Program-made: the position numbers and the translations under genes
The notes under the pieces: model-generated
Told to the model about the DNA's origin: nothing
Database searches by the model: none
Seen by the model: the letters and a program-made list of their open reading frames with translations, nothing else
In this document: positions 3,061-63,569 of the stretch, piece after piece
Layout of the letters: each line of letters starts with the position of its first letter
How positions within the stretch are numbered: position 1 is the stretch's first letter
From: Rhodosorus marinus CCMP1338
Taxonomy: Eukaryota > Plantae > Rhodophyta
DNA length: 64,000 nucleotides
Direction of reading: 5' to 3'
Assembly (NCBI GenBank): GCA_029953675.1
Contig: JAMWBK010000011.1
Coordinates: 1,364,001-1,428,000, forward strand

Positions 3061-3086
3061 TTACCCCAAACTAACCCAACCACCCC

Positions 3087-3693
3087 AGGTTACCCCAGAC
3101 TAACGTAACCGTAAGCTTTACTGGGCAGCTGCTTACTGCAGCGTAACACTACTTCTATCGCTATCTAGGGGAATACTTACTACAACCCCGCTACCGGGGT
3201 CTCATGCTACGTTCTAAAGAAAAAAAAGGCACCAGTGGATTCTCCAACTGGTCCACGCGCAAAGCGCTTAGCGCTATCTCCGCATTACCTCGCCAAAGTT
3301 GCCGGTTTATCTGCGATCTTATATCGCTCAGTTCTAGTCTCCTGTGCAAGAAATGCTTGCAGCTGTCCGGCAGAAACTCCTGTGCCATCGGTCCAGTCCG
3401 CCCAAATGTTTCTATTGCAATTGGGATGAACTTGTCATCCGGGTGTTCTAGCGTCATCGCCTCCTTGTAGTGCGCTTTCTTCCACCTCTCTGCACATCTT
3501 GCTGCATATCCACTCTGCTCCTGACTACGCCTCAGATACTTCCCTGGCAAAGGAGACATAACCGTCACGTCAAGCGCATACCGTTGAAATGTCCTCGGAT
3601 GCGTAGCAATGATGTCTGGCCGTAGCCCGTAGTTTTCAAAATACTTCTCTGGCTCCTGCTCGATGTCCACAAAGTTCCATCTGTTCAGCCACC
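3087..3693 (-). mobile_element. Family A 5'-truncated copy (RLE domain, 3' UTR, 16-mer tail)
   Basis: ORF 3191-3670: RPDIIATHP..YALDVTV..PIAIETFG..LWRGNA..ERSMRPR*. Ends GCTGCCCAGTAAAGCTTACGGTTACGTTAGTCTGGGGTAACC. Confidence 0.92.
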
Positions 3694-13081: not shown

Positions 13082-13751
13082 GGCCGAACGATTGAGCAAC
13101 CAAGCAATCCACAGTCCCAGAACGGATGCCTACCAACCCAAACACACACCTTCTCACTACGACTTATGCCAACGAGCAAACCCACCCGGATAGCGCTCCA
13201 GAACACATAAAAAGGGATAAACAGCCGCAAGCACCGAATGTCAGTTCTCTTCCAATCCTGACGTACCCGAACTCCAACTATGCATATATGATATCAGTGC
13301 ACACCCAACAAATCTTCCATGCACATGGGCTCTTGTGACGCAAAGGGAAAAATCGACCGAAATATGCTGAGGCAATAAACCATTCATCATCATCAGAGTA
13401 GGAGTATAAAATAGGCTACGTTAGCGTAGAATATGAGAAGGCGAAAGGGAAAAGGTAGACAAGTAACCACCAACAGAGCCTCCCTAAAACCCAAACCTAA
13501 GCAAAACATCCTCCCCAACCCTCCAAACCCCTTCCCCCCCCCAATAATAGGGATGCGCCCAGAAAGGGTTGCAGTAGTAAAGGCGCAAATTGTTAAAAAG
13601 GATTCGATGGATATTCAAAGTGGAAGCTGGAGTAGGCCATGGACCTTCAGTGCGACCTTAGTCGATCCTAGTCTTCCTTCCACTTGATTTTGTTTTTGCA
13701 TCCGATTAGCCAGATTAGCACTCTGCGGTGTGCACGACCAAATAAAAGAAT

Positions 13752-14639: not shown

Positions 14640-17600
14640 TAGGCGCTCGCGCAGAGGACCTTCCAGCTTTGGCGATTGCGGCCCATTTTGGGCGCCTTTC
14701 CCGGGTTCAGCAGAACCTACTAGATCGGCTCCCAATCAGCGGTTTTCTGTATTCTGCTCTTAAGGATTTTCTTGCCTCACAGACTTCGCTTTTGGAGACT
14801 CATCCTGTTTTTCTTCTTCAGGTGTTTCCCATGGGGCGTCTCTCTGAAGGCACGTTTCCTCTCATGGATGTGGAGGAGCCTCCTGCCATGGATAGTGCTG
14901 GCGGGGATCCGGTGGATCCGCTCGCTATCGAGCCGAGCACCCCCGAGGCCTCGGGTGTTCGGCGTCGCGTTGCCGGCTCTTTGGCGGCTGCTTATGCGTC
15001 CCTCTAATCTCTGCGTCTCCCTCCGCCCAAGCGTCCTCTTTTTGAGGCCAGGGGCGGGGGACAATTCTTCTCCTTCCCACCCTGATTGGCATCCCAATGA
15101 CGCTTCCTCCGGAGTGAGGGAGCAGGATATCCGAGTTCCTCCGGGATCCTTGCGAGCTCCCTGCTTTTTTCACTCTTCCGGGTAGTTTTGAGGACTGGCG
15201 TTCTACCCTTTTCCCCTGGTTTGCGGGGTTCGTAGCCCGTTTCCCTTTGGGGATATTCCTCTCTGCTCTCACTCCCGCCCACACTCTCACCCTCATTGCT
15301 TGCGTAGGCGGGTGTCTTTTCTTCTAGATTTTTTGCTGCTGGAAGTGGCTGACCATCATCAGGAGCCATTAGGTTGGAAACTAATGTTCATTTTCCCTCG
15401 TCTCGTCCTTACGGTCTCAAAAGGGCGTAACACATGCCCTATTCGCGGCAAAGTTCAAGCTTTTCTAGCTTGAAAGGAAGCAGTGGGGCAGAGGGATATG
15501 CGACGGGTTCGTCAATCCTTCAGCATGGCGCGTCAGTCGAACCTTATCGGACTGACCTGGCTGACGCAGTCACCGCGTTGTTTCCTGTGCACGACGTGAG
15601 TTGGAACGCTGGGTTCCAGACCCCTTCGCCGCCGCTCCGCAGGACACGGGTCGGGTGTTCGTCCGGTTTGATGAGGTTCAGGCTCTTATCGGGTCCGCTC
15701 CGCGACACTGTGCACCGGGTCCCTCTGGATTTCGCGTCGAACTCTTTCAGTGGTTGGGTGAGGACGGCTTGGACGCTCTGGCTCGAGTGCTTGAGGGCCT
15801 TGTCAATGGGGATGACCTTTGTGCGGATGCTTGGACGTAAGTGTCCCGCTCCCAGCTTGCACTGCTGCCCAAGCCTGGCCATATACGCCAGACACCTTCC
15901 TTGCGCCCAATCGGGATGCGTGAGGCGCTGCAGATGCTCGCGAGTCGTTTCCTCTCGCGCCGGTTCACTCTGGAAGCACGGAGTTTTTTTGGGCTGACGC
16001 AGGTCGGCGTCGGGTATTCCGGGGGTTTTGAATTGGTTTCTCGCGTACTTCAATTGGATGGTCCGCGCGATGAACCTTTCGGTACGCTCTCGGTCGATTT
16101 CACCAATGCTTTCAACAGCGGCTCTCGGGTTCATGCGCTGGAGGTTGTTCGTCAGTTGTTCCCGACAAGGTTCGGTTTCCTGCGGCGCGTCTACGGTGAG
16201 GGTCCAAATGGCCCCCGCCTTGACACCTTGGGCGTGGACACTCACACTTTCACAGCCCATACTGGGGTTCAGCAGGGGGACCCTCTCGGGCCTTTCCTCC
16301 GCGCCTGCGGATTACAGTTTGTGTTGTTGCGGCTCAAACACCAGTTCCCCAGGATCCGTGTCGTTGCCTTTCATGATGACGTGACGCTCCTCGGCACTCC
16401 GGATGATCTGGTGCCGGCTTACGATTTCCTCGGGGAGATGGCCACTTCGGTGGGCCTGTCGATATACCACGCGAAATGTGACTTCTGGGGTGACTCTCTG
16501 CGCACCGCTGCAGAAGTGCCCTCAAGATTTTTGGATATCTGGCGCCCAGAGGGTTTCATCCATTTTGTTGTCCCGGTAGGCACGCTGAGCGTTATCGAGC
16601 GCACCCTTGGCGAGCGAATGAGGGAACATGAGTCGCTGCTGGCCGAGTTGTGTCGGCTCCCTGAAGGGTTTTTGAAGACGGCGATGCCCATCTTCTGTTT
16701 CAGTGCGTGCCAGCGTTTGAACTATTTCCTCCGGCAGTTGCCTTCTCATTGGGGGGCATGGCTGGCCCTTCGAGAAGATCAGCGTGCGCGGGAAGTGTTG
16801 GGCTCCTTGCTGGACACGGATTTCTCTACACTTGAAGGCACCGACACGGACACCCTCCACCGACAGCTCGCTTTACGCGTCCGGCTGGGCGGGCTGGCCG
16901 TGGGGTCTTTTGCGCCCATCCAACCGGCGGCACTGGTGAGTTCATGGGCCAACTCGCTCATTACGTGGTCTCCCGAGGGCGATTCGAATGTGCGAGGTTT
17001 GCTCTGCGGCCTTCGTGAGGGGCGATTGGATCAACTTCTGAGCTCGCGGCTTGGTGGCCTGTTCGAGGAGTTGGAGAAAGCGCTGCAAGCGTGTATTACC
17101 GTACCCACTACTACACTGCCCCGCTATGGTTCTTGGCGGGCAGTTCTGGATTCCTTTCACGCCCAGGTCCCGGCGGCCGAGGCGGGTGGCGGACGGATCG
17201 CGCAGGATGTTGAGGCAGCCGGAGCTGTCGCTGATGTAAATGTTGATGCGGATGATGCTGAAACGGATGATGTGACCGTGCCTTCACGGCCGCCAGAGGA
17301 CTCTGTTTCTGAGTTGGGCCGGGTCCCATCGAGGAACGATGTAATTCAAAAGGCCCTATCATGGGACATACATCGCAACTCTCATGCCTACCTCCTGAGT
17401 TCACCGTCCCCTTCGGCCTCTACTTTGGCAAGCCTCCGCGGTTTGGGAGGTAGCCTGAGCTCGCATTTTTTTATGGTCATCCCTGCATATCCGCGGTTGG
17501 TGCTGGCGGATTTTGAGTTGCGGGTGGCCTTCCGCTTGTACCTGGAGTTACAACAACCCCCTTGGCCGTTTGGGCCAGATTCGATGTGCACTCTTTGCGG

Positions 17601-18235
17601 CGCTTCTGTGACCGTAGGTGATTCCGGTTTACACTTGTTGGCGTCTTGTGCGGAGGTCCAGAGAGCCCGAACCCGACGTCACACGCGGATAAATCGTTTG
17701 CTCTTTCGCTACCTTTGGTCGCAGGTACTCGGCACGGCCCGGGAGGTCGAGTATGAAGTTCCTTTACCAGTGGCAGCGGCAATTGAGGGCGAACCTGGTG
17801 GTGGACGCGGCAATGTGGTGCAGCGAGTTGCAGATCTTGTGGTGTCTGACCTGAATGCTCGTCAAAGCGAGTACATCGACCTTTCGATCCCATGCCCCAA
17901 AGCTTCCAGGTACTTGCCAGCGTCCGCCCAGCGTCAAGGAGCAGCCACTCGGTCGGTGCGGTTGTTGAAGGAGTCCCAGTACGCTGCGGGGATGCCGGAA
18001 CCCGCCCTACGCGACTCTGCGCTGTCGTATCGGTTTGTCCCCCTCACCATCGAATCCTTCGGCTTGGTTGACAGTGTGGGTTCTCGTTGGTTGCGTGGTA
18101 TTTTTGATCGTGACTCAGAGAGGTCTTGATAGCCTCCTCACGGAGCTGTTTTTGGCTCTTTGGCGTTGCAACGTTGCTTTGTTATCGGATGCACGTCATC
18201 AGCGTCTTGTTTCCCGTTTCTCAGGGTAGTTAGAT
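14640..18235 (+). mobile_element. Family D2 CRE-like element, 5'-truncated within ORF1; RT + Zn knuckle + RLE, with stops/frameshifts
   Basis: 15841-18129: RPIGMRE, SVDFTNAFN, QQGDPLGP, AFHDD, GGL, CTLC..HLLASC, RTRRH, VADLVV, YIDLSIPCP, PLTIESFG. 14669-15007 resembles D ORF1 (LKDFLASQTSLLETHP vs LEAFLSTEATLLEAHP). Confidence 0.92.
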
Positions 18236-20740: not shown

Positions 20741-22710
20741 TGACACCTCTCGCCTGACTCTCCAAGCAGCTACAGGAGTCCAACAGGGAGATCCACTGGG
20801 GCCGGTGCTACACGCACTATCCCTGGCGCCCTTTCTAAGAGCGTTGCGAGCCAAGTTCTCCAACGAAACGATTGCTGCTATCCACGACGATATCACGATT
20901 GTCGGGCCGCTACAAGCCTTGAAGGCATCCCTGGCATGGGGAAAAACTGTGCTCCCCTCTCTTGGAGCACGCCTGCAACTCGGCAAGTGCACTGTGTACG
21001 GGCGAACACTGACTACCACGCGAGTGGTCAATCATGAGATTCCTGGAGTCCAAGTGACCAGAGACGGAGTCACCATCCACTCGATACCGATAGGCAGCCG
21101 AGAATATATCGAACAGGAGTGCCGGGGGCTGCAAAATAAGCATGAGAAACTCTTTGAGGAAATTGCCAAGCTCCCACAACCGGAGCTTACGACGCAAATT
21201 GCCCTCTCCAGGTTCTGTGCGGAAACGCGGTTAGACTATGTTCTACGATGCCTCGCATACGAATTTGGAAGAACTCTGGCACGCGAGGCCGATGAGATGA
21301 CCAGATATCATCTGGAAATTCTATTCGGAGGCCTCGCTACGACAGCTGTAGAGGACGACGAGTACGCAGAGCTGATCTCGGACCAAATCGCTCTGCCCTG
21401 CAGCTGGGGGCGGGGGGTTGGGTTTCGCTACTCGAAAGCGCGTCCAACCCATCGCGTTTTACTCGTCATGGAGAAACACCTTCCGGAACAATGAAGATGA
21501 ATGGCCATACCTGACTGAACTAGAGCGGGAGGTTTCGGCAGAACGCTCACCAGACACATACGAGCCGACGGAGCAACGATGGTCGACTGCACAGCTGACG
21601 GACCAGATCTGTGCATCGTCGCGAGCAATACAACGGAGGCTCGGACCAGAAACCCCGCCGCGGATCTTGGCACTGACTACCCTGCAACAACCGCCAGAAA
21701 CATCTCTTCGAAGCGCACCGGGCGAGACTGCAGCTTGGAATAATGGTTCAATACAACAAACCCTCTCTCTGGAATGCACAATGGTGTGCCTCTCGAGAGA
21801 GAGGCACACCATTGTGCATTCCAAAGGTTGGTCACCAACCCACGAATCTCCCCTGAAAACCGAGCTTCGAGTCCATAGAGCAAGAGCCTGAGGGGTACTT
21901 CGAGAACTACGGACTGCGACCTGACGCGCTTTGCGCGTAGACCAGTTGGAGAATCCGCTGGTGCCTGTTTTTTCTTTTGAACGTAGCATGAGACCCCGGT
22001 AGCGGGGTTCCAGTAAGTTTCTCCCTAGATAGGATTAGACGTAGTGCTGCGCTGCAGTAGGCAGCTGCCCAGTAAAACTTACGGTTACTAGGCCCGAGGA
22101 CCAAACAAAGGTATGCGCTGGATGTGACTGCGGTGTCACCATTACAGGGAAAATATTTGCGGCGGAGCCAAGATGATAGTGGATACGCGGCGAGAGCTGC
22201 GGAGAAGTGGAAAATCGCTCACTACAAGGAAGCGATGGTGATCGAGAAACTGGATGACAAGTTCATCCCGATAGCGATAGAGACGTTTGGGCGTACGGGG
22301 CGAATGGCACAAGAGTTCCTCCGCGACAGCTGCAAACACCTACTGCACAGGAGTGAGGAGCTGAGAGACGTGAGATCCCAGATAAACCGGCAACTATGGC
22401 GAGGTAACGCAGAGACAGCACTAGGCGCTTCGTCTGGGGTTCCTCCGCGACAGCTGCAAACACTTACTGCACAGGAGTGAGGAGCTGAGAGATGTGAGAT
22501 CTCAGATGAACCGGCAACTATGGCGAGGTAATGCAGAGATAGCACTAGTCGCTTTGCGCGTGGACCAGCTGGAGAATCCGCTGGTGCCTGTTTTTTCTTT
22601 GAACGTAGCATGAGACCCCGGTAGCGGGGTTCCAGTAAGTTTCTCCCTAGATAGGATTAGACGTAGTGTTGCGCTGCAGTAGGCAGCTGCCCAGTAAAGC
22701 TTACGGTTAC
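20741..22710 (+). mobile_element. Head-to-tail family A truncated copies (20741-22088 with internal deletions; 22089-22710)
   Basis: QQGDP, AIHDD, RLDYVLRCL and RLE motifs; two A termini ending GGTTAC. Confidence 0.9.
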
Positions 22711-23760
22711 CTGGAGCGCCCGTAGGCCGGTTTTGGGAGTCTTGGTGGATGATTTTCGAAACGAATTCAACAGCGTCTCGTGGACGCATGCGTTGGAGGT
22801 GATCCGACGGGTTTTTCCGGAAGCGTGGCCCATCCCTCTCTGGTCTTTACCGAAGGGGGAGCATCTCCTACTGCACCAGGGAGGGCACTGTTTTCCAAGC
22901 ACGTACTCGAGTCCAACAAGGCGATCCTTGTGGGCCTCTACTTCATACTGGTGCCTTGCAGCTCGTTCTCCTGCGTCTCGCGACTGAGGTGCCGGCTCTT
23001 CGTATCTACGCCTATCACGACGACGCGACCTTGCTGGGCGCCCCTGAAACCCTGGCTCGGGGTTCGACCCAGGTCAAAACGATTGCACGTCGAGTAGGTC
23101 TGACGGTGGAATCAGAAAAGTGTCGTTTTCTCGCTCCAAAGTGAAGCTTCGATGGCTTCTCTGCCATCTAATCTACGAATCATTGACGAACGTGAAGGGT
23201 CGGAGCACCACGGCGTCGGTTTCGGGAGCAACAACTTCGTCCAAGCCCCTTGCGAACGAGTTTTGACACGGCACAAGCAGCTCACTGACGCCATTGAGCG
23301 CCTTCTAGAATGCATGCTGCAATTGGCCTGCTTGCTTTCCCGCTTTTGTGCCGGTTCCCGACTCAACTACTGCTTGCGTAGCCTACCACCCGACTGCAGT
23401 TCGTGGATCGCCGCGAAGGCCGACGAGATGGCGCTGCACCACTGGGGCACGCTCTTGGATGAACCCCTCGATCTTGAAGCTGCTCCCGACAGGGACTTAG
23501 TTCGTGCCCAGCTTGCTCTACTGTTGCGGTTAGGGGGATTTGGCGTCGCCGACCGTTGGCTCGTCTGCTCTCCTGCGGCGGGCGCGTCCTGGGCAACCGC
23601 GCTCCGTACCTTGGTGAATTTTCGGATACCAAGTGCCTGCCTTTTGGCTCGAGCACAGACTAGCGAGGACCCAGTGACCCTTCCGCCCCAGCTTTTGACG
23701 ATCCATGATGGCCTACAACAGGCGTTCGGCCTAGCGCTTCAGGCTATTCTAGTAAACCCC
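22711..23760 (+). mobile_element. Family C RT fragment joined to a family C 3' terminus
   Basis: DFRNEFN, QQGDPCG (frameshifted), AYHDD, GGFG. LTIHDGLQQAF matches TINDGLQHAF at 53629; then AGCGCTTCAGGCTATTCTAGTAAA. Confidence 0.82.
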
Positions 23761-24080
23761 AGGCGCACGGGCAATGTCTCTCAAATGAGGTTCTACCGAT
23801 GAGCGACTATTGCTGGTTGAATATTATTCCGGCTGGCCCTCGGCGGCGGGCTATAGCAGTGAGGTGGGCGCTGGCCACAGGGCATGTAATCGCGAGGTCA
23901 ACCTATGCATAATCTATCTGGCCTTTACAAATCTATCTGGACTTACTCTATCTAGCGTGGTACCTAGTTTCTAATTCCCTGCTCGCGGGTTTTGCGTAGC
24001 TTTAAGGCGATGGTTTCTAGTTTGATTTATATTCAATGCACAACTTACAATGCAATGAAACAATCTTAGCCAAAAGTCCT

Positions 24081-27000: not shown

Positions 27001-28011
27001 TCTCCTGGCTTCCCGCCAGGCCCTCCTCTGCCGGGATTAGATTCACCATTGAAAGAAATCAGCTGCTTCTTCATTGCTAAGGGCCCCATCTGCTTCTCCT
27101 CCGACAACAACGCTCGAGTAAATCTGTACGGTTCCTGCATGTCCACCAGGTCCACCTCTTCCTCCTTGTCCCGCCTGACCACCCGACATCGGATAACCGG
27201 GCTGATAGTACACACATTTCTTCTTGGGTCCGTTCTTGGTACCTGTAGGACACTCCTTACACCAAGAATCTTTGCATTTCCCAGCCACCCAGTTTTTCTT
27301 CTTGCCGCACTCGACTCCATCGATCGGCTTCTGTGCATTACCTCCGTCTCCACCATATCCACCGGTACTACCGTCGCTCCCATCAGTTCTTATGGTCATG
27401 GTATATCCTCCCTCGATTAGGCCCTCGATGTTCATGTACTTGGCGACCATGATGAAGCTTCCCCCCTGGTTGCCCGGACTGCCAATGGCTCCCGTACCTC
27501 CCGGTTTACCCTTTTTACCATGGCGATTCACGTTGACATCCTTCGTTCTCACCACAGGATCGGGGGTCTTCGGCGTGTCTGGCGCGATCGGTGGAGGTAC
27601 CGTGACCTCCGTTGCCTTCAGGTTGATCTCAAAATCTCCATCGCTCTGAATCTCAATGATATTCGCGACAATCGTCACGTTCGTACCCCGCATCTCAGCA
27701 GCCACCCCTGCCGCGCCCTTGATCAGAACGTAGTACGCGTATACTATGATATCCTGCTCAGTTCCAAACAACTTTGTCGTGCCCGTGCTATTCGACGTGA
27801 AGTCCATCGTGTAGAAGAACGGTGCATAGATTGCAAACGTTCCGCTCTCATCACCGTCCACGTATCCAGAACTCACATCCTGAGCCATCAAACACGTGGT
27901 ATTGGAGAATCCCCATCCATCACACACGCTCACGTCATCAGCACTCACTCCTCCGAAGCAGAGGAGCATCGCGAAGGTCATAGACCCAACCACCGCAAAC
28001 GTTCGCTTCAT
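24081..28011 (-). CDS. Large secreted protein (~1300 aa): Gly-rich/collagen-like N-terminus, long helical region, putative TcA-like C-terminal domain, PT linker; one frame break near 27050
   Basis: ORF 27043-28011 (signal peptide MKRTFAVVGSMTFAMLLCFGGVSA, GXX runs) overlaps ORF 24081-27383 in another frame, and the Gly-rich pattern continues across the junction. Functional label is inference. Confidence 0.75.
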
Positions 28012-28169
28012 CTCGTAGGTAGGTACTTACAAATCGCGCGGGGTAGTATTTCCATCTCTCGCTCTGGCTTGTTGCCCACCGGCATCCCAACTACTTTTCA
28101 CTTGGCTTATATAGGTTGTCAACCACCCTGTAGGGGCTATGCAAGTTGGTTTGGTGCTTCACTGGTAAA

Positions 28170-29560
28170 AAGCTATCCGTGAAGTCCCAGTAAGAAGCAG
28201 TTAAGGGAAAGTTCCACAGCAAAACGTTGACACGAGGCAGAAAGCGTTAGTCTGGATTTCGCTAGGTCTTCTTCTTCCAACCGTAAGCTTTACTGACAAC
28301 ACAGCTGCCTACCACAGACTTCTAGGAGTCAACACGAGCTTGATTATCCCTGTTTTGTTCAACCCGCGTTTCAAAATATGGTTTTCTGGAAGCAACTGGG
28401 GTTACGTTAGTCTGGGGTAACCCCTCACTTTTCCTCTTGGAACCACTCCCTGGACAACAACTCAGCACTCTAAAAATGCTCATGCAAATCGCCTTTCTAT
28501 ATGGAACGATAGAGCGCCTATGGAAAGTGCTGTTCTTGATAAACTTGCAAAACTCAGGATAATCGGCGAAGACCGCGTTTCAATGCTTTTCTGGAAGCAA
28601 CTGCCAGCAAAACCACCACCACCAGCAAAAACCAGTTCAGGGGAAATTTCCATAGAAATTTCTTGGCGCGAGGCAAAGAGCATTCCGCGAATCATCAACA
28701 CAAGGCCGACTACCCCTGCTTCGTTCAACTATCGCTTCAAAATTTGCTTTTATGAAAGCAACCGGCCCGGAATTGTCTTTGAAGTTTTACAGTAATCTTT
28801 TCACAATCGTTTGAATGACTATATCCGACCTGATCAAGTTCGAGCGCATCAAGGCAACTAACATATTCCAGGACAGGAGGTTGTTTCCGTATTAATTCCT
28901 TCACCGTTAAACCATACATATAAACCGCCCCTCAGAAGATTTCGTGAACAGCCAAATGTTAGAAGATGACGTCAATGCATGTCGAATGTTCCCGTAATAG
29001 GTCTACCTGTAGGCCAGAGACTAATTGTGGAGTTAGCCATGGATATCCGTGAAGTCCCAGTAAGAAGCAGTTAAGGGAAACTTCCACAGCAAAACATTGA
29101 CACGAGGCAGAAAGCGTACATTTCGCTAGGTCTTCTTCTTGCAACCGCAAGCTTTACTGGGCAAGCTGCGCACCACAGACTTCTAGGTGTCAACACGAGC
29201 TTGATTATCCCTGTTTCGCTCAACCCGCTTTTCAAAATATGCTTTTCTGGAAGCGACTGCTAGCAAAACCGCTACCACCACCAGCAATAACCAGTTGAGG
29301 GAAAATTTCCATAGAAACTTCTTGGCACGAGACAAAGAGCATTCCGCGAGGCCTTCTTCCACGAATCATCAACACAAGGCCGACTAACCCCGCTTCGTTC
29401 AACTGGACTTTACTAGCAACTGAATGAATGGTTACTAACGCTTAAAATTTTGCTTTTTTGAAAGCAACCGGCACGGGATTGTCTTCGAAGTTTTACAGTA
29501 ATCTACTCACAATCGTTTGAATGACTATATCCGACCTATCAAGTTCGAGTGCTCAAGGCA
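28170..29560. repeat. Diverged tandem duplication (~870-bp period) carrying an A/B-like retroelement terminus on the minus strand
   Basis: ATCCGTGAAGTCCCAGTAAGAAGCAGTTAAGGGAAA at ~28176 and ~29045, with co-linear flanks. AACCGYAAGCTTTACTG...AGCTGC at ~28279 and ~29144. Confidence 0.85.
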
Positions 29561-29619
29561 AGTAACGGACAAATGGTGGTTTCTCTATAATATTAAACCA
29601 TTCGTATTAATTCCTGTCA

Positions 29620-30590
29620 GCAAATGACATCAATACATGTGGAGTGTTCCCTTCATAGGTCTACCTGTAAGCTAGAGACTAAGTGTGAAGTTAGCCATGC
29701 AGACACGTCAGGCCAGACCGGGGGGTCGATGATAGCTGAGTGTGAGCAAGGAAAGCAGTATCAGAAATATTGAACATACGTATCAGCATAGGGCGGACAC
29801 TACCATATTCTACTTAATTATGGATTGCGAGTGGCTAACAAGCCAGTACCTAGTCTAGAAAAGGTACTTGCGTGACCTAGACTAAGAAAATAAAATAGGC
29901 TACGTTAGCGTAGAATATTAGAAGGCGAAAGATTGCTGAAAGGTTATGAGCCCAGCTTACTGACTACGGCGGGTAGAGAAACGGAGTAATCGGTATTGTT
30001 GGAATTGTCGGAAGGAGAAGTTGGAGACCGATTGATCCTACAGGCATTCATGAAGTACCCGCAACTTGAATCGCACGAAGGATATCGGTTGTGGACAATG
30101 CATGTAAGGGCGCGGCTAGGGGCATGTCGGTTGACGACGCTGGTATTCCGAGACGACGATGCGGAAGTGGACCCCCACCGACTCACCCTCGTGGGAGCTT
30201 GTATTTAGCTTACGCTTGGGGGGGTGCAACAGTTGATGGTTGCGGACGAAAGCGATCCCAAAGTGATTTGGGAAAGGTTCGAGAAAGTATACACCAACCG
30301 ATGGAGAAGGAACAAGGTCTACCTGCAAGCCAGAGACTAATTGTGGAGTTAGCCATGGAGACGTCTGGCCGGACCGGAGGGGGGGTCCATGATGGCTGAA
30401 TGAGAGCGAGAACAACAATGTCAGAAATATTGATTATATGAATCAGCATGGAGCGGACAAAACCATATTTTACTTAATTATGGATTATGGGTGGCTAACA
30501 AGCCAGTGCCGAGTCTAGAAAAGGTACCTGCGGTGACCTAGACCAGGAATATAAATAGGCTAGGCAGAGTAGAATATGAGAAGGCGGAAG
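29620..30590 (+). mobile_element. Degenerate repeat, probably the 3' end of another LINE-like family, two adjacent copies (related pieces at ~28990-29045 and ~13405-13445)
   Basis: GGTCTACCTG.A.GC.AGAGACTAA.TGTG.AGTTAGCCATG at ~29000, 29659 and 30317. AAATAGGCTA..AGAATAT.AGAAGGCG at 13410, 29893 and 30553. No catalytic motif recognised. Confidence 0.45.
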
Positions 30591-31239
30591 TGATAATATA
30601 GACGAGGGAGAATAATAGGAATGTGCCCAAGGGGTTGCAGAGTGAAGGCGCACATGGTTAGCACCAAAAATGGCGAAATATGGGAAACTCCTGAAAAAAA
30701 TCTGCACAGTCCAATTCTCACAGAAATCCATCAATTAGCCACCTTCTCAGTCTGGACTCCCCGGAGGCCCCCCAGGCCCCCCGCGGAGAGGTGTGGCAGA
30801 GAAGGGATGTCCCCCCGATCTCCACAAAACTTCGCAACCTCTGTGCACAAGGTCCGCATCGACTCGAACATCCCGGGAAAACCGGTCACCGTCAGCGCGG
30901 GGTCAAAACATCAGTCCCCTGAAAATTTCCGTATGCCCCACCAAAATTATGTTTCAACAACTCAACAGGCTAAAAATAGTCATGCAAATCGCCTTTCCAT
31001 AATAGTGGTTCGTTCCATATTAGTGAATTGTTGAATCGGGGACTAAAATATATACATTTTTCTATAAGAGACACATCAGCACGGAATATTTGTCATTCCA
31101 TTCCATACATATCGGCGCGAGAATCAACGTATGGAAGGCAAGGTGACCCTAGTTAACCCCAGTCCAGTCCGAGTCCAGTGAACCGCGAGCGCCCTGACTG
31201 TGTTCAAACTGCGTCTACCCGCCTGAGTTTCCAGCTGTG

Positions 31240-31540
31240 GTGCATGAACGCTGCTTTGATGTCATATGAGGGGCCTTTGTCTTCCCCAGGAGGTCGTGCT
31301 TCGTGACTAGCACATCGCTTGGTACCCCTGATCTTTGAGTGCTTTGGGTTTATGGACTCCGCTGGCTCTCGCGGGCTTCCGCGAGCGCTCTGACCGTCTT
31401 CAATCTTTGTTTACCCGTTTGAGTTTCCTGCTGTGGCGCATGAACGCTGCTTTGATCTTGGAAGCGCGCCATCTTCGCTGCGCTTAGTGGTTTTCCTGAT
31501 GCTGGAGACGCGCGATATTCATCATCATCATTCATTCAGG
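31240..31540 (+). mobile_element. Degenerate family D-like 3' ends with ATC/CATT tail
   Basis: Similar to 59005-59232 (GCACATCGCTTGGTACCCCTGATC, CTGTGGCGCATGAA). Confidence 0.75.
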
Positions 31541-31629
31541 GCCTAACTACCCTCAGAAGCGGGAAACAAAACCCTTTTGGCGCGCGTCCAGGCCCTAATT
31601 TCCCTCTCGTAGGACACCCATCCCAGGGT

Positions 31630-34600
31630 TATTTGCGGCGGAGCCAAGATGATAGCGGATACGCGGCGAGAGCTGCGGAGAAGTGGAAAATCGCTCACTA
31701 CAAGGAAGCGATGGTGATCGAGAAACCGGATGACAAGTTCATCCCGATAGCGTTAGAGACGTTTGGGCGTACGGGGCAAATGGCACAAGAGTTCCTCCGC
31801 GACAGCTGCAAACACCTACTGCACAGGAGTGAGGAGCTGAGAGACGTGAGATCCCAGATAAACCGGCAACTATGGCGAGGTAACGCAGAGACAGCAATAG
31901 GCGCTTTGCGCGTGGACCAGCTGGAGAATCCGCTGGTTCCTGTTTTTTCTTTTGAACGTAGCATGAGACCCCGGTAGCGGGGTTCCAGTAAGTTTTTCCC
32001 TAGATAGGATTAGACGTAGTGTTGCGCTGCAGCAGGCAGCTGCCCAGTAAAGCTTACGTTACGTTGGTCTGGGGTTCGGCCTGACTTTCTAGCCCGACAC
32101 CCACGAACAGGCAAGCTCTACGTGATCGATGTGAATCTGGGGTTACGTTAGTCAAGGCCAAATGCACGCTCTACGGCCGAGCCTTGACGACGGCGCGAGT
32201 CATCAATCGCGAGATACCTGGCATACATGTCACCCGAGAAGGCGTCACTATCCATTCGATCCCGATGGGAAACCGGGAATATATCGAGCACGAGTGCCGT
32301 GCGCTTCAAAATAAGCACGAAAAAGCTCATCAAGGAATCAAGGAAATAGCACAGCCACCGCAACAGGAACTTAACGCACAGGTCGCATTGTTCAGGTACT
32401 GCGCGGAAACGCGGCTAGATTACCTGCTACGATGCCTAGCCTACCCGTTCGGCCGCAGTCTGGCACGGGAGGCGGACACCATGACGAGATATAATCTGGA
32501 AACCTTGCTCGGAGGCCTCGCTACCTACCTCTGGCATGGAGGACGAGGAGCACCTGGGACACATCTTGGAACATATTGCGCTGCCTTGCTGGTTGGGGGG
32601 GATTTGGGTTCGCTCCTCGACGGCGTATCCAACCTATTGCTTACTACTCGGCATGGACAAATACCTTTCGAAGCAATACAGGGGACTGGCCTCACATTGC
32701 TGAGCTGCAGAGGCAGGTCTATACAGACAGAACTCCGGCTACGAACAGCGCGACACGACTAAAATGGTCCACAGAACACCTCGCAGACCAGATACAATCA
32801 TCTGCTCGAGCGATACAACGCAGGCTGCGGCCCGAAACTCCGCCGCGGATCAGGAGACTGGCCACCCTGCAGCAGACGAGGGAAAACGCCCCAGAAAACT
32901 GTGGCGATTGGAATAATGGTTCTACACAACAAACTCTCTCTCGGGAGGCACACCATTCAGCATTCCAACGCCTGGTTAGCAATCCGCGCATCTCTGGCGA
33001 ACATCGCGCTCGAATCAGGTCGGCGGCGGGCTCTGGATCGGGAGTCTGGCTGCGCGAACTGCCGACGTTGGAGCCGAAAAAGCTGAGCTCGATCGAAATG
33101 CAGGTGAATATCCGACAACTACTGGGGCTACCGATTCCAGGGCTGCGAACTACGGAAAAATGTACTCTATGCCGTGGTAAACACGGAGCAAATGGAGTAC
33201 AACGCTTTCATCATTGCCCCACGTCGACGGGGCTGTGGCAACGTAGGCATGACGAGATATGCACGGAGATCGCAAGGTCGCTGAACCGGTGGAACTTTGT
33301 GGACATCGAGCAGGAGCCAGAGAAATATTTTGAAAATTACGCGCTACGGCCAGACATCATTGCTACGCATCCGAGGACATTGCAACGGTATGCGCTGGAC
33401 GTGACGGTTGTGTCTCCTTTGTAGGGGAAGTATCTGAGGCGTAGTCAGGAGGAGAGTGGATATGCAGCAAGATGTGCAGAGAGGTGGAAGAAAGCGTACT
33501 ACAAGGAGGCGATGACGCTAGAACACCCAGATGACAAGTTCATCCCAATTGCAATAGAAAAATTTGGGCGGACTGGACCGATGGCACAGGAGTTTCTGCG
33601 GGACAGCTGCAAGCATTTGTTGCACCGGAGCCTAGAACTGAGCGATATAAGATCGCAGATAAACCGGCAACTTTGGCGAGGTAATGCGGAGATAGCGCTA
33701 GGCGCTTTGCGCTTGGACCAGTTGGAGAATCCACTGGTGCCTGTTTTTTCTTTAGAACGTAGCATGAGACCCCGGTAGCGGGGTTGGAGTAAGCATTCCC
33801 CTAGATAGCGATAAAGTAGTGTTACGCTGCAGTAGGCAGCTGCCCAGTAAAGCTTACGGTTACGTTAGTCTTTATAAGGAAGTGCTGAGGGGGCAAAACC
33901 GAGATGTGGTTCTTGTGCCGTTCATTTTTGAGACTTTTGGTCGAATGGGCCAGGCAAGCCTTGAATTTCTTCGAACGGCGAGCGCGCACCTGCATGATCG
34001 TGACTCCCATCTATCGTTGGTGAGGGGTCAACTAAACCGCATTTTGTGGCAGCACAATGCTGCGCTAGTTGAGCACGCGATCTAGAAAGATCGCGCAGAT
34101 AGACCGATATTTCCCCTAAGTAGAATTTAGATGAGACTCCTGGACAGGGAGTCCAGGTTTGGTTAGTGCGTACGTAGTGATCGTGTGATGCGCTACACTA
34201 GGTAGCTGCCCAATAAAGGCTACGGGGTTACGTTAGTCTGTGGTTTGCGCAAGGTTGCAACGCAATGGACTCTTCACGCGGTTATGGACAGGGTGCGTGA
34301 GCTCCTGGTGCCCTTACAACTGGGTATTGGAGTAAGTGGCGGGTGCGAACGCTCACTTCACAGGATCCAGGCCCATTTGTCATGCGAACCCGATTCGGTG
34401 GTCCTTCGGCTAGACCTGGAGACTGCCTTTAATCGCATCGACCGACGACTTGCCAAGCAACTGGTGGACGAGCACTTCCCGGAGCTTGCACCACTGTATA
34501 GACTTGGCTATGGAAGCGACAACGCGGACTCACCGACGCTCTGTGGCTGGCGATCTTCCCCTGGACAGAACGAAACCGACACCTCTCGCCCGACTCTGCA

Positions 34601-39935: not shown

Positions 39936-41360
39936 AGGGCTGTGCCAAGTGGGTCGGGTTTTGGGCGGCCTCTTCTAACGTTCAAATTTTCTCCCGCACT
40001 CATCGCCTGGTTCCTTTGTTTAATCCAATGCTGAAAAAAAGCCGAGGGGCAAAATTGATTGCGAGCGGCGAAGATCGCTCCAACATTAATTGACTCGAGA
40101 AGTGGACGGCGATAGTCGTCGCACTACGTAGGTTCACCTTCTGTTCCTAATCCTAATGTTTCGGGAGTGATCCGCGAACGTATTGACCGTCTTTCCTCGT
40201 TGACGGGTGAACAATGGGGGGGAAAGACGGTCAGGACGTACGCGTACACTCCCGAACATGAATTGAATGAATTTATTTAAATTAGTGAATGATTGACTGA
40301 ATGATTGATTTGTATCGATCTAACCGATAGTTAACGGCGCGGGGAGAGCTGTGGTGGTCCAGCCGATGTGTTCCAATCATCATTGGTGAGGTTAGCTACT
40401 CGGCAATGAGTACTGGTGGGCTCTTCCATTTATTAATCCTTGAATATTCGTCGCTTTTCTGACGGGTGAAATCCTGAGAAAAGAAGAGACCACCCTCTCT
40501 AACGTTCGAATTTTCCTGCCTGAAAAAACATCAGTAATAACAACAAAGGACGCCTACCTCTGTAGGACGGCCCGTTGAACTTCCGTATGGTTCAAAATAT
40601 AATTCAAAATTCCATCTCGTTCAATTTCGTCTTTTGTTCTTTTTTGACTTCAGGGTGCTGAGTATTGGGTGCTCCCTACGTTGTTTAAGTGTCGCTCTCT
40701 GGCATATTTTGGCAGCATCTCGCCGATGTGCGCCACCACCGGCTGGGCAGCTCTTGCATGCTTCTCTCCCTAGTACCTAGCTCCATTTTATAAAACCGCT
40801 TCAGGCTATGCTAGTAAACCACCAACACTCTGAAGCTTTGCAAGAACGGACGGCGTTCGACTACGGGGTCACCCCCCCCCCATAGGACAATGGATTCCCA
40901 AGATATGTATATAGTCGAAATTGCAACTGAAATTTTGATTTAATTGGACACCAAAGACACACGGGGGCAAGTTGAACTATAGAAAGCATGGTGGATTGTC
41001 TTCTCATTTGGAGGGGGAGGGGGGAGGGGATTTGAGTGATGTATCAAAGAAATTCATTTTGAACACATAAAAACAATCTAATCGAATGTCGAAATTATAT
41101 ATATGAAAACTAAACTCAGGAATCTGTATTTTTTGATCAAAAGTTTTGGAAGTTTGCGAAGTGAAAAAGGTCAAAAAAATTGAATAGTCGAAATTACATA
41201 TTAAATTCTATTTTGGCCTCGGTTTACGTTGGTCTGAGAGAATTCAGAGGCTGAAAGAAAAAAAACGTTGTCAGCCAGGTGCTACCACATACAAATCATG
41301 GCCGTTCCCCAGCGTTGAGTGTACATCGGGGGTGGGTCGTGCCCTTAATTTCTTATCATT

Positions 41361-41480: not shown

Positions 41481-41977
41481 AATGAAGTTTTCTAATTTGC
41501 ATACACAGTGCTGCTCACGCAATCTTGCTCGACTCTAGTCCTTAGTCTTCTTGCACGCCTTACCTGGACTTTACTGGACTTTACTAGCATAGCCTGAAGC
41601 CTTACGTAGCGCTTCAGGCTATGCTAATAAACCCAATTGGCAACAAAACAAAGTGGAGGAGAAAAGTTGAACATTAGATGAATGTGTTTAGCGGACGTTG
41701 AAAACATGAATGAGTTTGCGGACACTGAAAAAAAAAACGATAGAAGGTGTGGTCGGTTGCTTTCGCCCGGGTGTTGATGAGTGGAAAGGATGGAAAGATT
41801 TGTTTCTATGAATCGAAATGCATTGGAATAGAGATGTATTGGGGCCGAGGTCCCACACTATTTAATCTACGAGGTTAGCCTGCGGAGCATGCCGAGGTGT
41901 GAGAAATTGAGTTCGGCTCAGCGACCTTTTTTGGCACAGGGACCAATTCTGGCTCATTGTTGGGAGTTTGAAGAAAC

Positions 41978-44484: not shown

Positions 44485-44646
44485 TTTCGTTCGCTTAAGT
44501 TTCCTGCTGTGGCGCATGAATGCCGCTTTGATGTTGGAGGCGCGAGTACTTCGCCGCGCTTAGTCTTTTTTTCCCCTCGGGGTTTTTTTCAGCCTCCGAT
44601 TAAACCATTCATTCATTTCGTTCGACGAATGGTTTAATCGGAGGGC
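44485..44646 (+). mobile_element. Family D 3' end with 9-bp TSD TTTCGTTCG, abutted by an inverted ~20-nt D tail
   Basis: TSD at 44485-44493 and 44616-44624; CCTCCGATTAAACCATTC (44593-44610) is inverted at 44627-44644. Confidence 0.85.
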
Positions 44647-45343
44647 TATCGTTGGTGCAGAGCGAAAACATAGAAAACAATTATTTTAAAGTATATCATA
44701 AAAACTAGAGAAACACGAATAAAAACATTTAAAACGTAAAATGTTGTCAAGGACGTACTGAAAGCACCAATCAGACATCTAAAAAATAATAACAAGAGGT
44801 AACTCAACATGACCTCTAACGACAATTTTCTCATATCAAGCAATGAAAAAGCGCCAAGCGTCCCTATCCAACAGAATAAAATTTATTTCTTCTTTGTTTT
44901 CTGCCTGCTTCGGGGGGGGGGGAGGGGGCGCGATGCGTGCCAGTATCGAGCTAGAGCGGAGGATGGAGGACAAGCACATTGAGGAGGGCGGTCGTCTGGC
45001 AGGGAGCGGGCTTCGAGAGTGGGTCTTTTCTTACCATTTTCTTGTCTGGAATCTTACATTCTTGGTTCGACTCGAAAAACTCAAGAGCAACGAAGTCGAA
45101 AACGAAGTACGATGTGAGAAAAGATGAGTTCAGCATTTAAAGGCTGAATCGCCGGAGGGGGTGGCCAGGTTGTTGGTGAGCTGATTTACGGTGGGCTAGT
45201 GTTCTGTATCCGCCTGAGTGAAGAGTTTCCTTTTAGTGAGCGGCTATAACGCGCCGGTGAAGTTGCGTGTGTATGAGCTGGTGAGGTGCGTGACTTGTCG
45301 TGTTGGTTTGGAAAACGTTGGGTGCTGAGAAGAAATTCCAACA

Positions 45344-47980
45344 ATGTTCTGGAAGTTGGTGATATTCTGTCTGGGATTATTCGGTGTTATTAGCATCACC
45401 TCGGCTCAGGTTCAGTATGGACATCAGTCATGCAACAAGGATCTTCTTAAGGATGACTGGAAACCCAAGAGGTATGAGCGATTCTCGGAAATTTTGGCTA
45501 AGACGCCGCATGGGAAGCCGGTTAAGATACCATGTGGAGTGGCGGTGATTGTAGATACTAAAGATATCCCCAAAGTTAATGGAATTGAGGTTCTCGGGCT
45601 TCTGTATGTACCTCCGAACGTTGGTAAGCTTGTGGTTAGAACTCAGTACGTGCTTGTGACGGGGTACCTGAGGGTCGGAGATGAGCGAGGGATGCGAAAG
45701 GGTAGCAGGGTTGATTTCGTTCTGGACAACTTTGACTACAAGCTGAAGGATGTCATCGTGAATTCTGAGGAACTGGAGATCGTAGGTGGGAAGAACGAGG
45801 TTGTAGGTAGTGACGGGAGACTTGGACGACTGTCGTTTGCTGTGATAGGGGGACAGATTGAGATTCATGGGCTTGCTAGAAAAGATACTAGATCTGTACA
45901 CAACCTCCTACATCGGAGGGCGGAGAAGGGAGATGAAGAGATTACTGTGGAGGAGCCGTGCGAATGGCCGATCGGGTCGAGAATTCTGATTGCTACGACG
46001 AGCTACCGTAAGCGGGAAACGGAGGAACGGGTGATCAAGGGGACAAGCACCAATTCTAAAGGTATGGCGGTGCTGAAGCTGAACAGACCGCTCAAGTACA
46101 AGCACCTCGCTACCGAGGATTCGTACGAAGATGTGAAGGGCTACAAGGTGGAAATGCCCGCGGAAGTTGTGCTATTGACTCGGCCTGTGAGGATCAGCAG
46201 GCGTAAGACGAGCAAGCAGTCAAGCAAGTTCGGACCGCACTTGATGGTAGCGAACACACAACTCAAGCAGGTGATCCACGGCGTGGAGTTTGTCGAGATG
46301 GGTCAGCTGGGGACGCTCGGGAGATATCCGATTCACTTCCACCTGTGCGGAAAAACGGATTGGTCTGAAGTCTATGGATGCAGTATATTGCGAAGCAATC
46401 AGCGCGGCATAGTAATCCACGGAACCGACAAGGTAAAAATCTTCGACAACGTTCTGTACGACGGGGCCGGACACCAGATCATGATGGAGGACGGAATCGA
46501 GGAACAGGGAAAGTACTACCGCAATGTTGTGGTCAACTGCGACGCCATCCGAAGACGTGACCTGCTTCCTGACTCTAGTGATGATCAAGTGTCTGGAATC
46601 TGGATATCCAACCCGAGAAACGAGTTCAAGGGGAACAGGGTAGTCGGAAGTGAAGTTGCTGGCATCTTTACTGAGCTGAGGGCCGTCACAGGACCATCCA
46701 AGGAACTCCCACGTGCGAAGAATTTTGATCCTAGGTTCGAGCTCCTCGATCTCTTCGTGGACAACGTCGTCCACACCAACGGGGAGTTCGGGCTATGGTT
46801 CAACGGCTGGACACCGCCTAAGAGGGTCTCTGTGGGGCGCATAAACTCATACAGAAACCTGGTCCACGGGGTGCTAATGGAATTGAGTTCGAGCTTGGAA
46901 CTCCACGACAGTGTGCTCGTAGACAACGGAGGAGGGATCGACTTGGATCGAATGCACAACTCGAGGGTGAGCGACTCTCTTATCGTTGGGAAAAGCAAAA
47001 TGCCCGGGGCGAATTGTCCAAAGGCTCACTCGGTCGAGTTTAAGAATAGAATGTTTGAGAGGGAGAGCCGATCAGCATACCTCGCTAATGTGACATTTGA
47101 TGGCTTCAAGGACTGCAAGTCTACGGGTGTTGTAGGTGTACAAGGAGACGATCCTGCCGTCCAGTTCAACGGTTGGAGTACGAGCACCGGGCTGCGCAAC
47201 TGTCATTTTCTGGATATTGGACCTGATCAAGGCTTTGGTCTAAGGAACGCCGAAAAATCGGACTTTCAGTGGTCCGAGTTTGTGGCTATTCCCGCTAGAG
47301 ACACAACGTGGGGGAAGAAAACGATACCCAATGGTTTTGCCATCGCTGACACACCGTTTATGGTCCCCGACCCAAAGAGGAAGAAGTGCGTGGCGATCAG
47401 GGAGTTTGGAAAGTTCTGTTCGGGCGTTTGCTTCAGAACGGTGAACGTTCAGCTGACAGTGGATAGTATCTTCGACCTTAGCTATCAACTTGAGGTGATC
47501 AAGGTGGACGGAAAACTTAGGTCCGAAGTAGTAGTAAGTCCGTTTAAGAGTATCCTGGCCCCCACCAAGTTGCAGTACTTCTTCACGGTGGAAACCGCTG
47601 TTAAGTACGCTGTTAAACTGAGGAAGCAAGACAACAGGCCCTTTCCCACGCGGATGTTTGTGGACGTAGGAGATCAGGACCTCAGATGCACGCGGGGAGA
47701 CATTCTGCTCGACTTTGAGATGGATGGGTTCTCACTTGGCAGAGCGAGAAAGGAAAAGCAACCAGCCAAACGCTACTGGACTGGGTGCCGAAAAAAACAC
47801 ACGCCAAGCACTAGTGTGTACTACCAAGACAAGTGCAAGGGGGGCAAGATGTTCAGGAGGGTTACTATCCCTCACAAGGCCTTGCCCTACAATCGCCAAC
47901 AGGTGCTTGCCTCGAGCGGTCTCGAGTTCAACATTAACGAGGGTTCACCAAAATGTAAAACCGACAAGACCTGCGACTAG
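45344..47980 (+). CDS. Secreted G8-domain / pectin-lyase-like beta-helix protein (CEMIP/TMEM2/fibrocystin-L-like), 878 aa, intronless
   Basis: Signal peptide; G8-like beta strands with conserved Gly (IEVLGLLYV, VLVTGYLRVG, AVIGGQIEIHG); VVLLTRPVRI; GRYPIHFH hallmark; IVIHGT, GIWISNPRNEFKGNRVVGS. Confidence 0.88.
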   Translation: MFWKLVIFCLGLFGVISITSAQVQYGHQSCNKDLLKDDWKPKRYERFSEILAKTPHGKPVKIPCGVAVIVDTKDIPKVNGIEVLGLLYVPPNVGKLVVRTQYVLVTGYLRVGDERGMRKGSRVDFVLDNFDYKLKDVIVNSEELEIVGGKNEVVGSDGRLGRLSFAVIGGQIEIHGLARKDTRSVHNLLHRRAEKGDEEITVEEPCEWPIGSRILIATTSYRKRETEERVIKGTSTNSKGMAVLKLNRPLKYKHLATEDSYEDVKGYKVEMPAEVVLLTRPVRISRRKTSKQSSKFGPHLMVANTQLKQVIHGVEFVEMGQLGTLGRYPIHFHLCGKTDWSEVYGCSILRSNQRGIVIHGTDKVKIFDNVLYDGAGHQIMMEDGIEEQGKYYRNVVVNCDAIRRRDLLPDSSDDQVSGIWISNPRNEFKGNRVVGSEVAGIFTELRAVTGPSKELPRAKNFDPRFELLDLFVDNVVHTNGEFGLWFNGWTPPKRVSVGRINSYRNLVHGVLMELSSSLELHDSVLVDNGGGIDLDRMHNSRVSDSLIVGKSKMPGANCPKAHSVEFKNRMFERESRSAYLANVTFDGFKDCKSTGVVGVQGDDPAVQFNGWSTSTGLRNCHFLDIGPDQGFGLRNAEKSDFQWSEFVAIPARDTTWGKKTIPNGFAIADTPFMVPDPKRKKCVAIREFGKFCSGVCFRTVNVQLTVDSIFDLSYQLEVIKVDGKLRSEVVVSPFKSILAPTKLQYFFTVETAVKYAVKLRKQDNRPFPTRMFVDVGDQDLRCTRGDILLDFEMDGFSLGRARKEKQPAKRYWTGCRKKHTPSTSVYYQDKCKGGKMFRRVTIPHKALPYNRQQVLASSGLEFNINEGSPKCKTDKTCD

Positions 47981-50298: not shown

Positions 50299-50716
50299 TA
50301 ATAATTCCTACTTTTCAATCAGGTAGAAAATTCGAACGTTGACAGGAGCGGTCGGGTTGTTTGAAATTGATTTTTATAGTACGCGAAAGTCGCAGTGCGG
50401 ATGCTGGAAGAGGGAAGGGTGGGGGAGGGGAACAAAACTATTGGGAATACATTGCACTTCCGAGTGGAAAAGGATGAGGTGTGCTCTATGAATCGGTACG
50501 ACGCAGGGCGGTTGCTTTGTGGGTACGGGCTTCATTTTGAGTTGGATGGTTTTTGCTGCTGAGTATGAAAAATTCAAATTCAAAGTCACCGGCGTTACGC
50601 TAGAACCAGCGATTTGGACAAAGTCGAGAAGTAAGAGAATTGTACTGGCTAGTGTTGCGTAGCGCTTCAGGCTATGCTAGTAAAGTCCTATGCTAGTAAA
50701 GTCCAGTAAAGTCCAG

Positions 50717-63530: not shown

Positions 63531-63569
63531 CACTTAACCTCAAGAGTCAATGGCCAAGACTAATCATCA

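Follow-up and report, generated by a model that had tools for sequence, protein, structure and literature searches.

We analysed a 64-kb window (the whole stretch of 64,000 nucleotides) of the red alga Rhodosorus marinus CCMP1338, assembly GCA_029953675.1, contig JAMWBK010000011.1, together with one related 2.7-kb contig, L002, from a Joint Genome Institute (JGI) sample. The window contains three retroelement families, here called A, C and D, and, in the intergenic region at 28-30.6 kb, a pile of tandem duplications upstream of a secreted-protein-like open reading frame (ORF) at 27043-28011 (-). Two of the duplicated units, X1 and X2, differ by insertions that carry short patches identical to the 3' tails of these retroelements. 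Our results suggest that the patches are probably extremely short copies of the elements, abandoned soon after reverse transcription had begun. The features that carry the argument are as follows (TSD, target-site duplication).

28174-29043: tandem unit X1, carrying events (ii) and (iii); aligned to X2 with MAFFT
29044-29701: tandem unit X2, carrying event (i) and providing the empty site for (ii) and (iii)
29405-29436 (-): event (i), a 32-nt insertion in X2, missing from X1 (after 28731) and from the two copies of the other sub-repeat
28248-28255 (+): event (ii), TAGTCTGG in X1 in place of AC (X2 29118-29119)
28399-28603 (+): event (iii), a 205-nt extra segment in X1, from the MAFFT alignment
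28364-28398: copy 1 of a direct repeat, 35 nt, read as a long TSD
28573-28603: copy 2 of the direct repeat, 31 nt, at the end of the 205-nt segment
28279-28326 (-): older family A-type 3' end, 45-48 nt (...GCAGCT..CAGTAAAGCTTACGGTT), in X1; counterpart in X2 at 29143-29187
59395-59430 (-): tail-only family C copy of 12 nt (59407-59418) between perfect 12-nt TSDs, CTCTACCTCTCT (59395-59406 and 59419-59430)

Polarity of the indels between the tandem units

X1 and X2 are 88-91% identical over aligned columns, and each is composed of two diverged sub-repeats. Their MAFFT alignment recovered all three indels that the initial annotation had noted between the duplicated units. Polarity was assessed in a four-way alignment, with the internal sub-repeats of the X units as the outgroup. 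Event (i) is present in one of the four sub-repeat copies, as is event (ii), and thus both are insertions rather than deletions in the paralog. For these two events, the sub-repeat outgroup therefore argues against the possibility, considered at the outset, that the short versions arose by deletion. The older family A-type end is present in X1 and X2 and missing from sub-repeat B, indicating that it was inserted before the X duplication. A block of ~46-55 nt (AGGTCTACCTGTAGGCCAGAGACTAATTGTGGAGTTAGCCATGGA) closes both X units and opens two more repeats of ~275 nt (28998-29043, 29660-29931, 30315-30603).

Ordinary indels arise in this DNA as well, since a 15-nt indel (X2 29347-29361; X1 at 28690) is a deletion in X1 between CGCGA repeats. 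None of the remaining X1/X2 indels (3, 8, 10, 15 and 28 nt) matches a tail. Across the whole window, tail sequence occurs in two of 31 small indels between paralogous copies, both of them focal events, so tail patching is no general source of indels. Two metagenome scans, one with an X-unit 24-mer and one with the family A tail 18-mer, yielded neither an allele nor an ortholog of the X region.

Families A, C and D are R2-like LINEs

The source families were defined by the following copies (RT, reverse transcriptase; RLE, restriction-like endonuclease).

50718-52435 (-): family A reference copy, 5'-truncated; ORF 50804-52411 ends in a CCHC motif and an RLE domain; the body ends ...CAGTAAAGCTTACGGTTAC
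52505-53645 (-): family C reference copy, 5'-truncated; ORF 52553-53629 with an RLE domain; tail GCTAGTAAAGTCC(AGTAAAGTCC)n
56178-59286 (+): family D copy; RT ORF 56178-58655 and RLE ORF 58702-59232; tail ...CCGATTAAACCATTCRTTC

Within each family the copies have a common 3' end and a variable 5' truncation, as in non-LTR (long terminal repeat) retrotransposons. Family A ends in ...GCAGCTGCCCAGTAAAGCTTACGGTTAC followed by 0 to ~1.5 units of GTTAGTCTGGGGTTAC, family C in ...GCTTCAGGCTATGCTAGTAAAGTCC followed by 0-2 more AGTAAAGTCC units, and family D in ...CAGCCTCCGATTAAACCATTC followed by (A/G)TTC repeats. The Pfam domain RVT_1 was identified in ORFs 56178-58655 (family D) and 15841-18129 (another element), and the best PDB matches of the RT domains are L1 ORF2p and R2 proteins. 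The C-terminal regions of families A, C and D, of the 15841-18129 element and of P0052 align over a common set of motifs (C..C, RRH, E, (A/P)D(L/I)V and D..(V/I)). A profile of the four-family C-terminal alignment matches the RLE region of R2 proteins (residues 913-1027, E=1.6e-07; residues 959-1090, E=2.2e-06), with the CCHC, RRH, PD and D motifs aligned between the two. The LINE (long interspersed nuclear element)-type RT and the RLE-domain match together identify the families as R2-like, RLE-bearing LINEs, and these R2-like families are previously undescribed. No Exo_endo_phos match, the mark of an apurinic/apyrimidinic endonuclease (APE), was found in the ORFs scanned, and no copy is demonstrably full-length at its 5' end. 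A single insertion target, which is typical of the R2-like group without strictly defining it, is absent: the flanks differ between copies, and their only common feature is a similarity of 2-8 nt between the target and the tail phase.

Longer copies carry TSDs. One family D copy of 290 nt, lodged in a family A copy, is flanked by the 6-nt TSD ATTGTG, and two other family A copies preserve the empty site. The TSDs of three further family D copies are 8-11 nt long (ATTACTTCTT, GATTGAATAT and TTCGTTCG), and their initial bases extend the family D tail phase ATTC/GTTC. The bases that follow family C insertions (AGTT, AGAGAGGTAGAG and AGTTCAT) all start like the next tail unit, AGT... An inverted duplication of 29-35 nt (TGGAATGCACAATGGTGTGCCTCTCGAGA beside its reverse complement) lies within a family A copy at 21767-21801, the exact site where another family A copy (35835/36133) took a family D insertion, and this site may be a preferred nick site.

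In L002, a family A-like body is 72-78% identical to the window copies and retains the tail 18-mer TTACGTTAGTCTGGGGTT intact (L002:150-190, 2190-2225), with a second 5'-truncated copy directly after the TTACGTTAGTCTGGGGTT tail. An MMETSP transcript encodes a 76%-identical protein. Judging from sequence comparison, constraint appears to be stronger on the tail than on the coding sequence. Folding of the element 3' ends gave no significant structure (z -0.4 to -1.5), and we do not claim a stalling hairpin.

The patches match retroelement tails beyond chance

The patches match the ends of the three families exactly: GCTAGTAAAGTCC is the family C end, AACCATTCATTC the family D end and TTACGTTAGTCTGGGGT the family A tail unit, with exact matches of 13, 12, 11 and 23 nt. 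The initial annotation had read the patches as copies of retroelement 3' tails, and these identities bear it out. The tail strings are also far from chance frequency in the window. When one mismatch is allowed, GGACTTTACTAG is found 14 times (0.13 expected); GAATGAATGGTT is found five times (0.27 expected) and CTGGGGTTACGTTAGTC, with three mismatches allowed, seven times (0.10 expected). Tail 10-mers form 44 clusters, whereas Markov-shuffled sequence gives 3.8.

As a control, long copies were masked and the source regions of the isolated matches in the three reference elements were recorded. Almost all isolated matches of at least 13 nt fall in the 3'-terminal ~45 nt of the elements, and the ~6 kb of element body yields essentially single 12-mers only, at chance level. 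The matches of at least 13 nt are at 4955, 28279, 28396, 29149, 32136 and 63351 for family A, at 29402, 40806, 41564, 41605 and 59405 for family C, and at 29421 and 44627 for family D. A 14-nt family D match at 41725 was not counted, as it falls in a T-run stretch (GTTTTTTTTTTCAG).

Nothing except the shortness of the strings would favour chance matches, or 'tails' that are pre-existing target motifs. The enrichment counts, the lack of the strings at the paralogous empty sites and the TSDs flanking the stubs themselves leave this explanation a practically negligible probability, and the empty sites and TSDs rule out pre-existing target motifs. Transposon excision footprints and assembly artefacts were likewise rejected as explanations.

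Junctions and target-site duplications

On the plus strand, event (i) reads TTCAACT, then GGACTTTACTAGC and AACT, then GAATGAATGGTT and ACT, then AACGC; the empty site reads TTCAACT followed directly by ATCGC. The minus strand accordingly reads AGT-AACCATTCATTC-AGTT-GCTAGTAAAGTCC followed by the target AGTT, with a family D tail stub at 29422-29433 and a family C tail stub at 29405-29417. After each stub stands a copy of the last 3-4 target bases (AACT and ACT), which we read as a TSD. Event (i) would then comprise two aborted insertions primed at one nick, directly after TTCAACT, each with its own short TSD; family D would have come first (TSD ACT) and family C second (TSD AACT), an order that we infer. 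This is the simplest history for (i). Alternatively, one event with a template switch could have produced (i), in which case the internal AACT would have to be a coincidence. The tails of two families do adjoin each other here, as the initial annotation had described, but the single chained event that it envisaged is not required, given the separate AACT and ACT duplications. Neither the family C nor the family D tail has another DNA copy within 8 kb of (i).

Event (iii) is larger than a patch. After CTG (28396-28398), X1 reads GGGTTACGTTAGTCTGGGGTAACC and X2 reads CTAGCAAAACC. The extra segment in X1 opens with a fragment of the family A tail (28399-28422; 27 nt with the shared CTG), continues with ~150 nt of other sequence and closes with the second copy of the flanking repeat. 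It had been described as a tail-only patch: the family A tail does follow CTG, but it forms the left edge of a 205-nt insertion, and neither the full segment nor its 31-35-nt repeats figured in that description. Within the ~150-nt body, 28455-28501 alone has a relative in the window (30955-31001; 47 nt, 87%). BLAST with 7-nt words detected no other source for the body in the window, and Rfam gave no match in 28000-31700. Event (iii) may represent a longer insertion in which the complementary DNA (cDNA) switched, at its 5' junction, to the 3' tail of an RNA from family A ('extra template'). A junction at ~35191 had been likened to it. There, CTG is indeed followed by GGGT (CTG-GGGT-GAAAC), but four extra bases are too few to be assigned to a tail. 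The fillers at such sites are GTCTGGGGTT at 22430 and GGGT at 35192.

In event (ii), TAGTCTGG and the flanking CGT together form the 11-mer CGTTAGTCTGG of the family A tail. The event has no TSD, two target nucleotides were lost, and CGT provides microhomology at one junction. The same CGTTAGTCTGG recurs 160 bp downstream in the same orientation (28405-28415). Event (ii) could reflect break repair or DNA-templated copying from this nearby 11-mer, and since it fits both RT break repair and a DNA template 160 bp away, the two readings are inseparable for this event. Microhomology of 3 nt is found at the junctions of all three events (CGT at (ii), CTG at (iii) and ACT/AGT at (i)), in agreement with the initial annotation.

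An RT that patches chromosomal breaks without an endonuclease would let the broken 3' end pair with tail RNA, and end-joining would then seal the gap. The structure of (ii) just described is of this kind, the left junction of (iii) uses CTG, and four to five tail-derived insertions fall within 1.2 kb of non-coding DNA. However, TSDs flank the stubs of (i), the 205-nt insertion of (iii) and the 12-nt copy at 59395-59430, TSDs of the same kind occur on ordinary copies of these families, and every family encodes an endonuclease of its own. We therefore regard patching of breaks as unlikely. Break repair, to which the patches had first been ascribed, is unneeded for most events, and (ii) is the only one that fits it.

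For (ii), the identical CGTTAGTCTGG downstream also favours DNA-templated patches, produced without RNA or RT by polymerase theta-type end-joining or short-tract gene conversion; theta-mediated end-joining typically takes the templates of its insertions in cis from such a distance. For (i), however, the nearest family C and D tail copies are more than 8 kb distant. The pathway does not predict TSDs, and it leaves unexplained why copying is confined to the extreme 3' ends of elements rather than drawing on arbitrary nearby DNA. DNA templating is thus a decidedly improbable account. The TSDs at (i), (iii) and 59407-59418, like the 6-11-nt TSDs of longer family D copies, are marks of target-primed reverse transcription (TPRT) initiated by an endonuclease.

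A continuous series of 5'-truncated copies

Further short copies and rearranged tails are present elsewhere in the window.

50655-50717 (+): tandem pair of tail-only copies from family C (34 nt and 28-30 nt), directly next to a family A 3' end
32136-32153 (+): isolated family A tail, 18 nt (TCTGGGGTTACGTTAGTC), 5 nt upstream of a divergent 5'-truncated family A copy at 32159-33871
40797-40818 (+): isolated family C 3' end, 22 nt (CGCTTCAGGCTATGCTAGTAAA), flanked by a possible 5-nt duplication, AAACC
44627-44648: inverted family D end, 22 nt, adjoining a family D tail
41560-41631 (family C) and 44596-44648 (family D): inverted tail duplications, a tail and its reverse complement a few bases apart

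The inverted duplications resemble products of snap-back synthesis or of double insertions joined 3' to 3'. The lengths of the family C copies that bear a tail are ~12, 13-17, 22, 28, 28-30, 34, 37, 43, 69, 95, 106, 192, 329, 589, 1038 and 1140 nt. This continuous series places the 'tail-only' insertions at the short end of the 5' truncation series. Copies shorter than 50 nt make up about half of family C in the window.

The stubs could also be remnants of longer copies after internal deletion. Ordinary deletions do occur in the X units, such as the CGCGA-bounded loss in X1. Each such deletion, however, would have to begin exactly at the 5' junction, leave just the last 12-17 nt of the element and spare both TSDs, and would have to have occurred repeatedly and independently (at 59395-59430, twice at (i), and at others). 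In addition, the stubs are 100% identical to the tail consensus despite the ~10% divergence between X1 and X2. Deletion of longer copies is accordingly very improbable.

The abundance of short copies brings in another possibility, that tail-only synthesis is a distinct and frequent outcome in which RLE-LINE ribonucleoproteins act like telomerase and copy a tail unit onto nicked or broken ends. If true, such particles would sometimes act one family after another, the stubs would record past nicks and breaks, and the family C copies shorter than 50 nt, about half of the total, would be accounted for. We consider it quite doubtful.

Two further sites carry tail sequence in other contexts. At 23729-23832 (+), the 5' half of a U4 small nuclear RNA (snRNA)-like sequence is joined at its first base to 28 nt of a family C 3' end (GCCTAGCGCTTCAGGCTATTCTAGTAAA). 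Of the U4 model, the 5' 75 positions are present and the 3' 63 are missing; an antisense family C fragment follows at 23836-23907. Chimeric retrocopies of U6 and L1 are known, and the sequence at 23729-23832 looks like a comparable chimeric retro-pseudogene. At 63351-63363 (+), a 13-nt family A tail string (GTCTGGGGTTACG) with ACGT on both sides lies inside the ORF at 59478-63533 (-), which encodes an ABC transporter. This N-terminal site could be an in-frame 18-nt insertion encoding a repeated VSV..VSV peptide; in a search of ABC transporter orthologs, the matches did not reach the N-terminal region with 63351-63363.

A model for the origin of the patches

We then propose that the patches are dead-on-arrival copies of R2-like LINEs with RT and RLE domains, produced by TPRT that aborts early and supplemented by template jumps. 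We consider this account likely. It draws together several findings: the patches are identical to tails, both short indels are insertions, TSDs are present, truncation lengths form a continuum and the elements are LINEs of the RLE type.

In this model, the target would be nicked by the element's endonuclease, and the freed 3' end would pair over 2-3 bases with the tail repeat of the RNA (AGTAAAGTCC in family C, NTTC in family D and GTTAGTCTGGGGTTAC in family A). The contribution of this pairing between tail and target is suggested by the way in which the flanks resemble the tail phase. Reverse transcription would then begin and halt after 8-30 nt. The short cDNA would be connected to the upstream target, in many cases through 3 nt of microhomology, leaving a tail stub and a short TSD. 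The 5' junctions of the 'extra template' class would include 28399-28422 of event (iii), where a template jump is a candidate source of the tail fragment, 23729-23757 (the family C tail on the U4-like sequence), 22430, 32136 and the GGGT at 35192. The inverted duplications at 41560-41631 and 44596-44648 would belong to the 'snap-back' class. Of the initial interpretation, the writing of tail patches by RTs and the use of microhomology are thus retained, whereas neither break repair nor chaining in a single event is required.

Several observations weigh against this account. The skew of family C towards short copies is steeper than usual for LINEs, so something beyond random abortion might be at work. 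Event (ii) lacks a TSD and lost two target bases. The 3-4-nt duplications at (i) are so short that coincidence may play a part. The ~150 nt after the tail fragment in (iii) have no source that we could find, which leaves the template jump there a candidate only. Finally, the evidence comes from 64 kb of genome, with no allelic or orthologous empty site found.

Setting of the window

The contig is 1.44 Mb long, and the window covers the part ~14-78 kb from its end. There are few ORFs, among them those for the intronless ABC transporter, a CEMIP-like beta-helix protein and the two RTs, and an 878-aa ORF lies at 45344-47980. Interspersed repeats total ~18 kb, and the window is dense in nested RLE-LINE copies in both orientations, mostly 5'-truncated. 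This contig-end region may be a subtelomeric retroelement graveyard. Degenerate G-rich telomere-like repeats (GGGGTAACCTGGGGTGGTTGGGTTAGTTTGGGGTAAAAGCTCTGGGGTTGG) continue after one family A tail at 2990-3092 (-).

A further repeat, AAAATAGGCTACGTTAGCGTAGAAT, is common to a repeat near 13.4 kb (13400-13460) and to the Y units near 29.9 kb (29893-29925). A family D-like sequence, TAAACCATTCAT, lies immediately upstream of the copy near 13.4 kb, at 13376. The AAAATAGGCTACGTTAGCGTAGAAT repeat may be another short retroelement family.

Comparison with known systems

In human cells, insertions made by R2 protein are frequently 5'-truncated, and their 5' junctions fall into the classes 'Join', 'Snap-back' and 'Extra template', the last arising when a second RNA is copied (PMC11331408). 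Truncation, template jumping and microhomology-mediated 5' joining are textbook features of LINE integration (PMC2881922), and end-to-end template jumping by R2 RT is attributed there to Bibillo and Eickbush (2004; cited in PMC2881922). Short L1-mediated retro-copies with TSDs are documented in humans (PMC2831318), as are L1-mediated retro-pseudogenes of at most 300 bp (PMC2881922; PMC2831318).

The R. marinus insertions resemble 5'-truncated R2, L1 and CR1 copies in that they are 3'-anchored, carry TSDs, use microhomology in 5' joining, form a length continuum and are missing from empty sites. Unlike those copies, they shrink to 8-17 nt, the tail alone, and roughly one family C copy in two in the window falls below 50 nt. 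The junction at (iii), the family C tail on the U4-like sequence and the fillers at 22430 and 35191 resemble in their geometry R2 'extra template' junctions, in which a 3'-end fragment of a second RNA stands at the 5' junction of an insertion. In contrast to the experiments on R2 in cells, these are natural fossil events in a red alga with several co-resident LINE families.

The 'stringent-type' LINEs have short 3' tandem repeats, such as (TGTAA)n in eel UnaL2 and the octamers of CR1. As in these elements, the number of tail units varies in R. marinus (0 to 2.5), and the tail phase runs into the target, pointing to base pairing or slippage when synthesis is initiated. However, the stringent-type LINEs are APE-type, whereas the R. 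marinus enzymes are RLE-type and their tail units are longer (10 and 16 nt).

Related processes are endonuclease-independent L1 insertion, the capture of retroelement cDNA at double-strand breaks and interstitial telomeric repeats added by telomerase. Event (ii) would fit such a process, as a short RT-written sequence at a repaired break. Unlike endonuclease-independent insertions, most R. marinus events have TSDs, and the elements encode an endonuclease.

With early-aborting TPRT as the source, the accepted mechanism of LINE integration is unchanged: the stubs are an expected by-product of it, and the patches are the extreme short end of ordinary LINE 5' truncation, together with template-jump junctions. 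The stubs are recognisable because the tails are distinctive units of 10-16 nt and not poly(A). In genomes whose LINEs end in poly(A), aborts after a dozen bases are invisible; in R. marinus they can be counted, a natural measure of the frequency at which LINE integration fails just after it has started. The stubs also reveal the nick sites of the endonuclease and the modes of 5' joining, by microhomology, extra template or snap-back. The tail is, moreover, conserved far better than the body in these R2-like families of a red alga.

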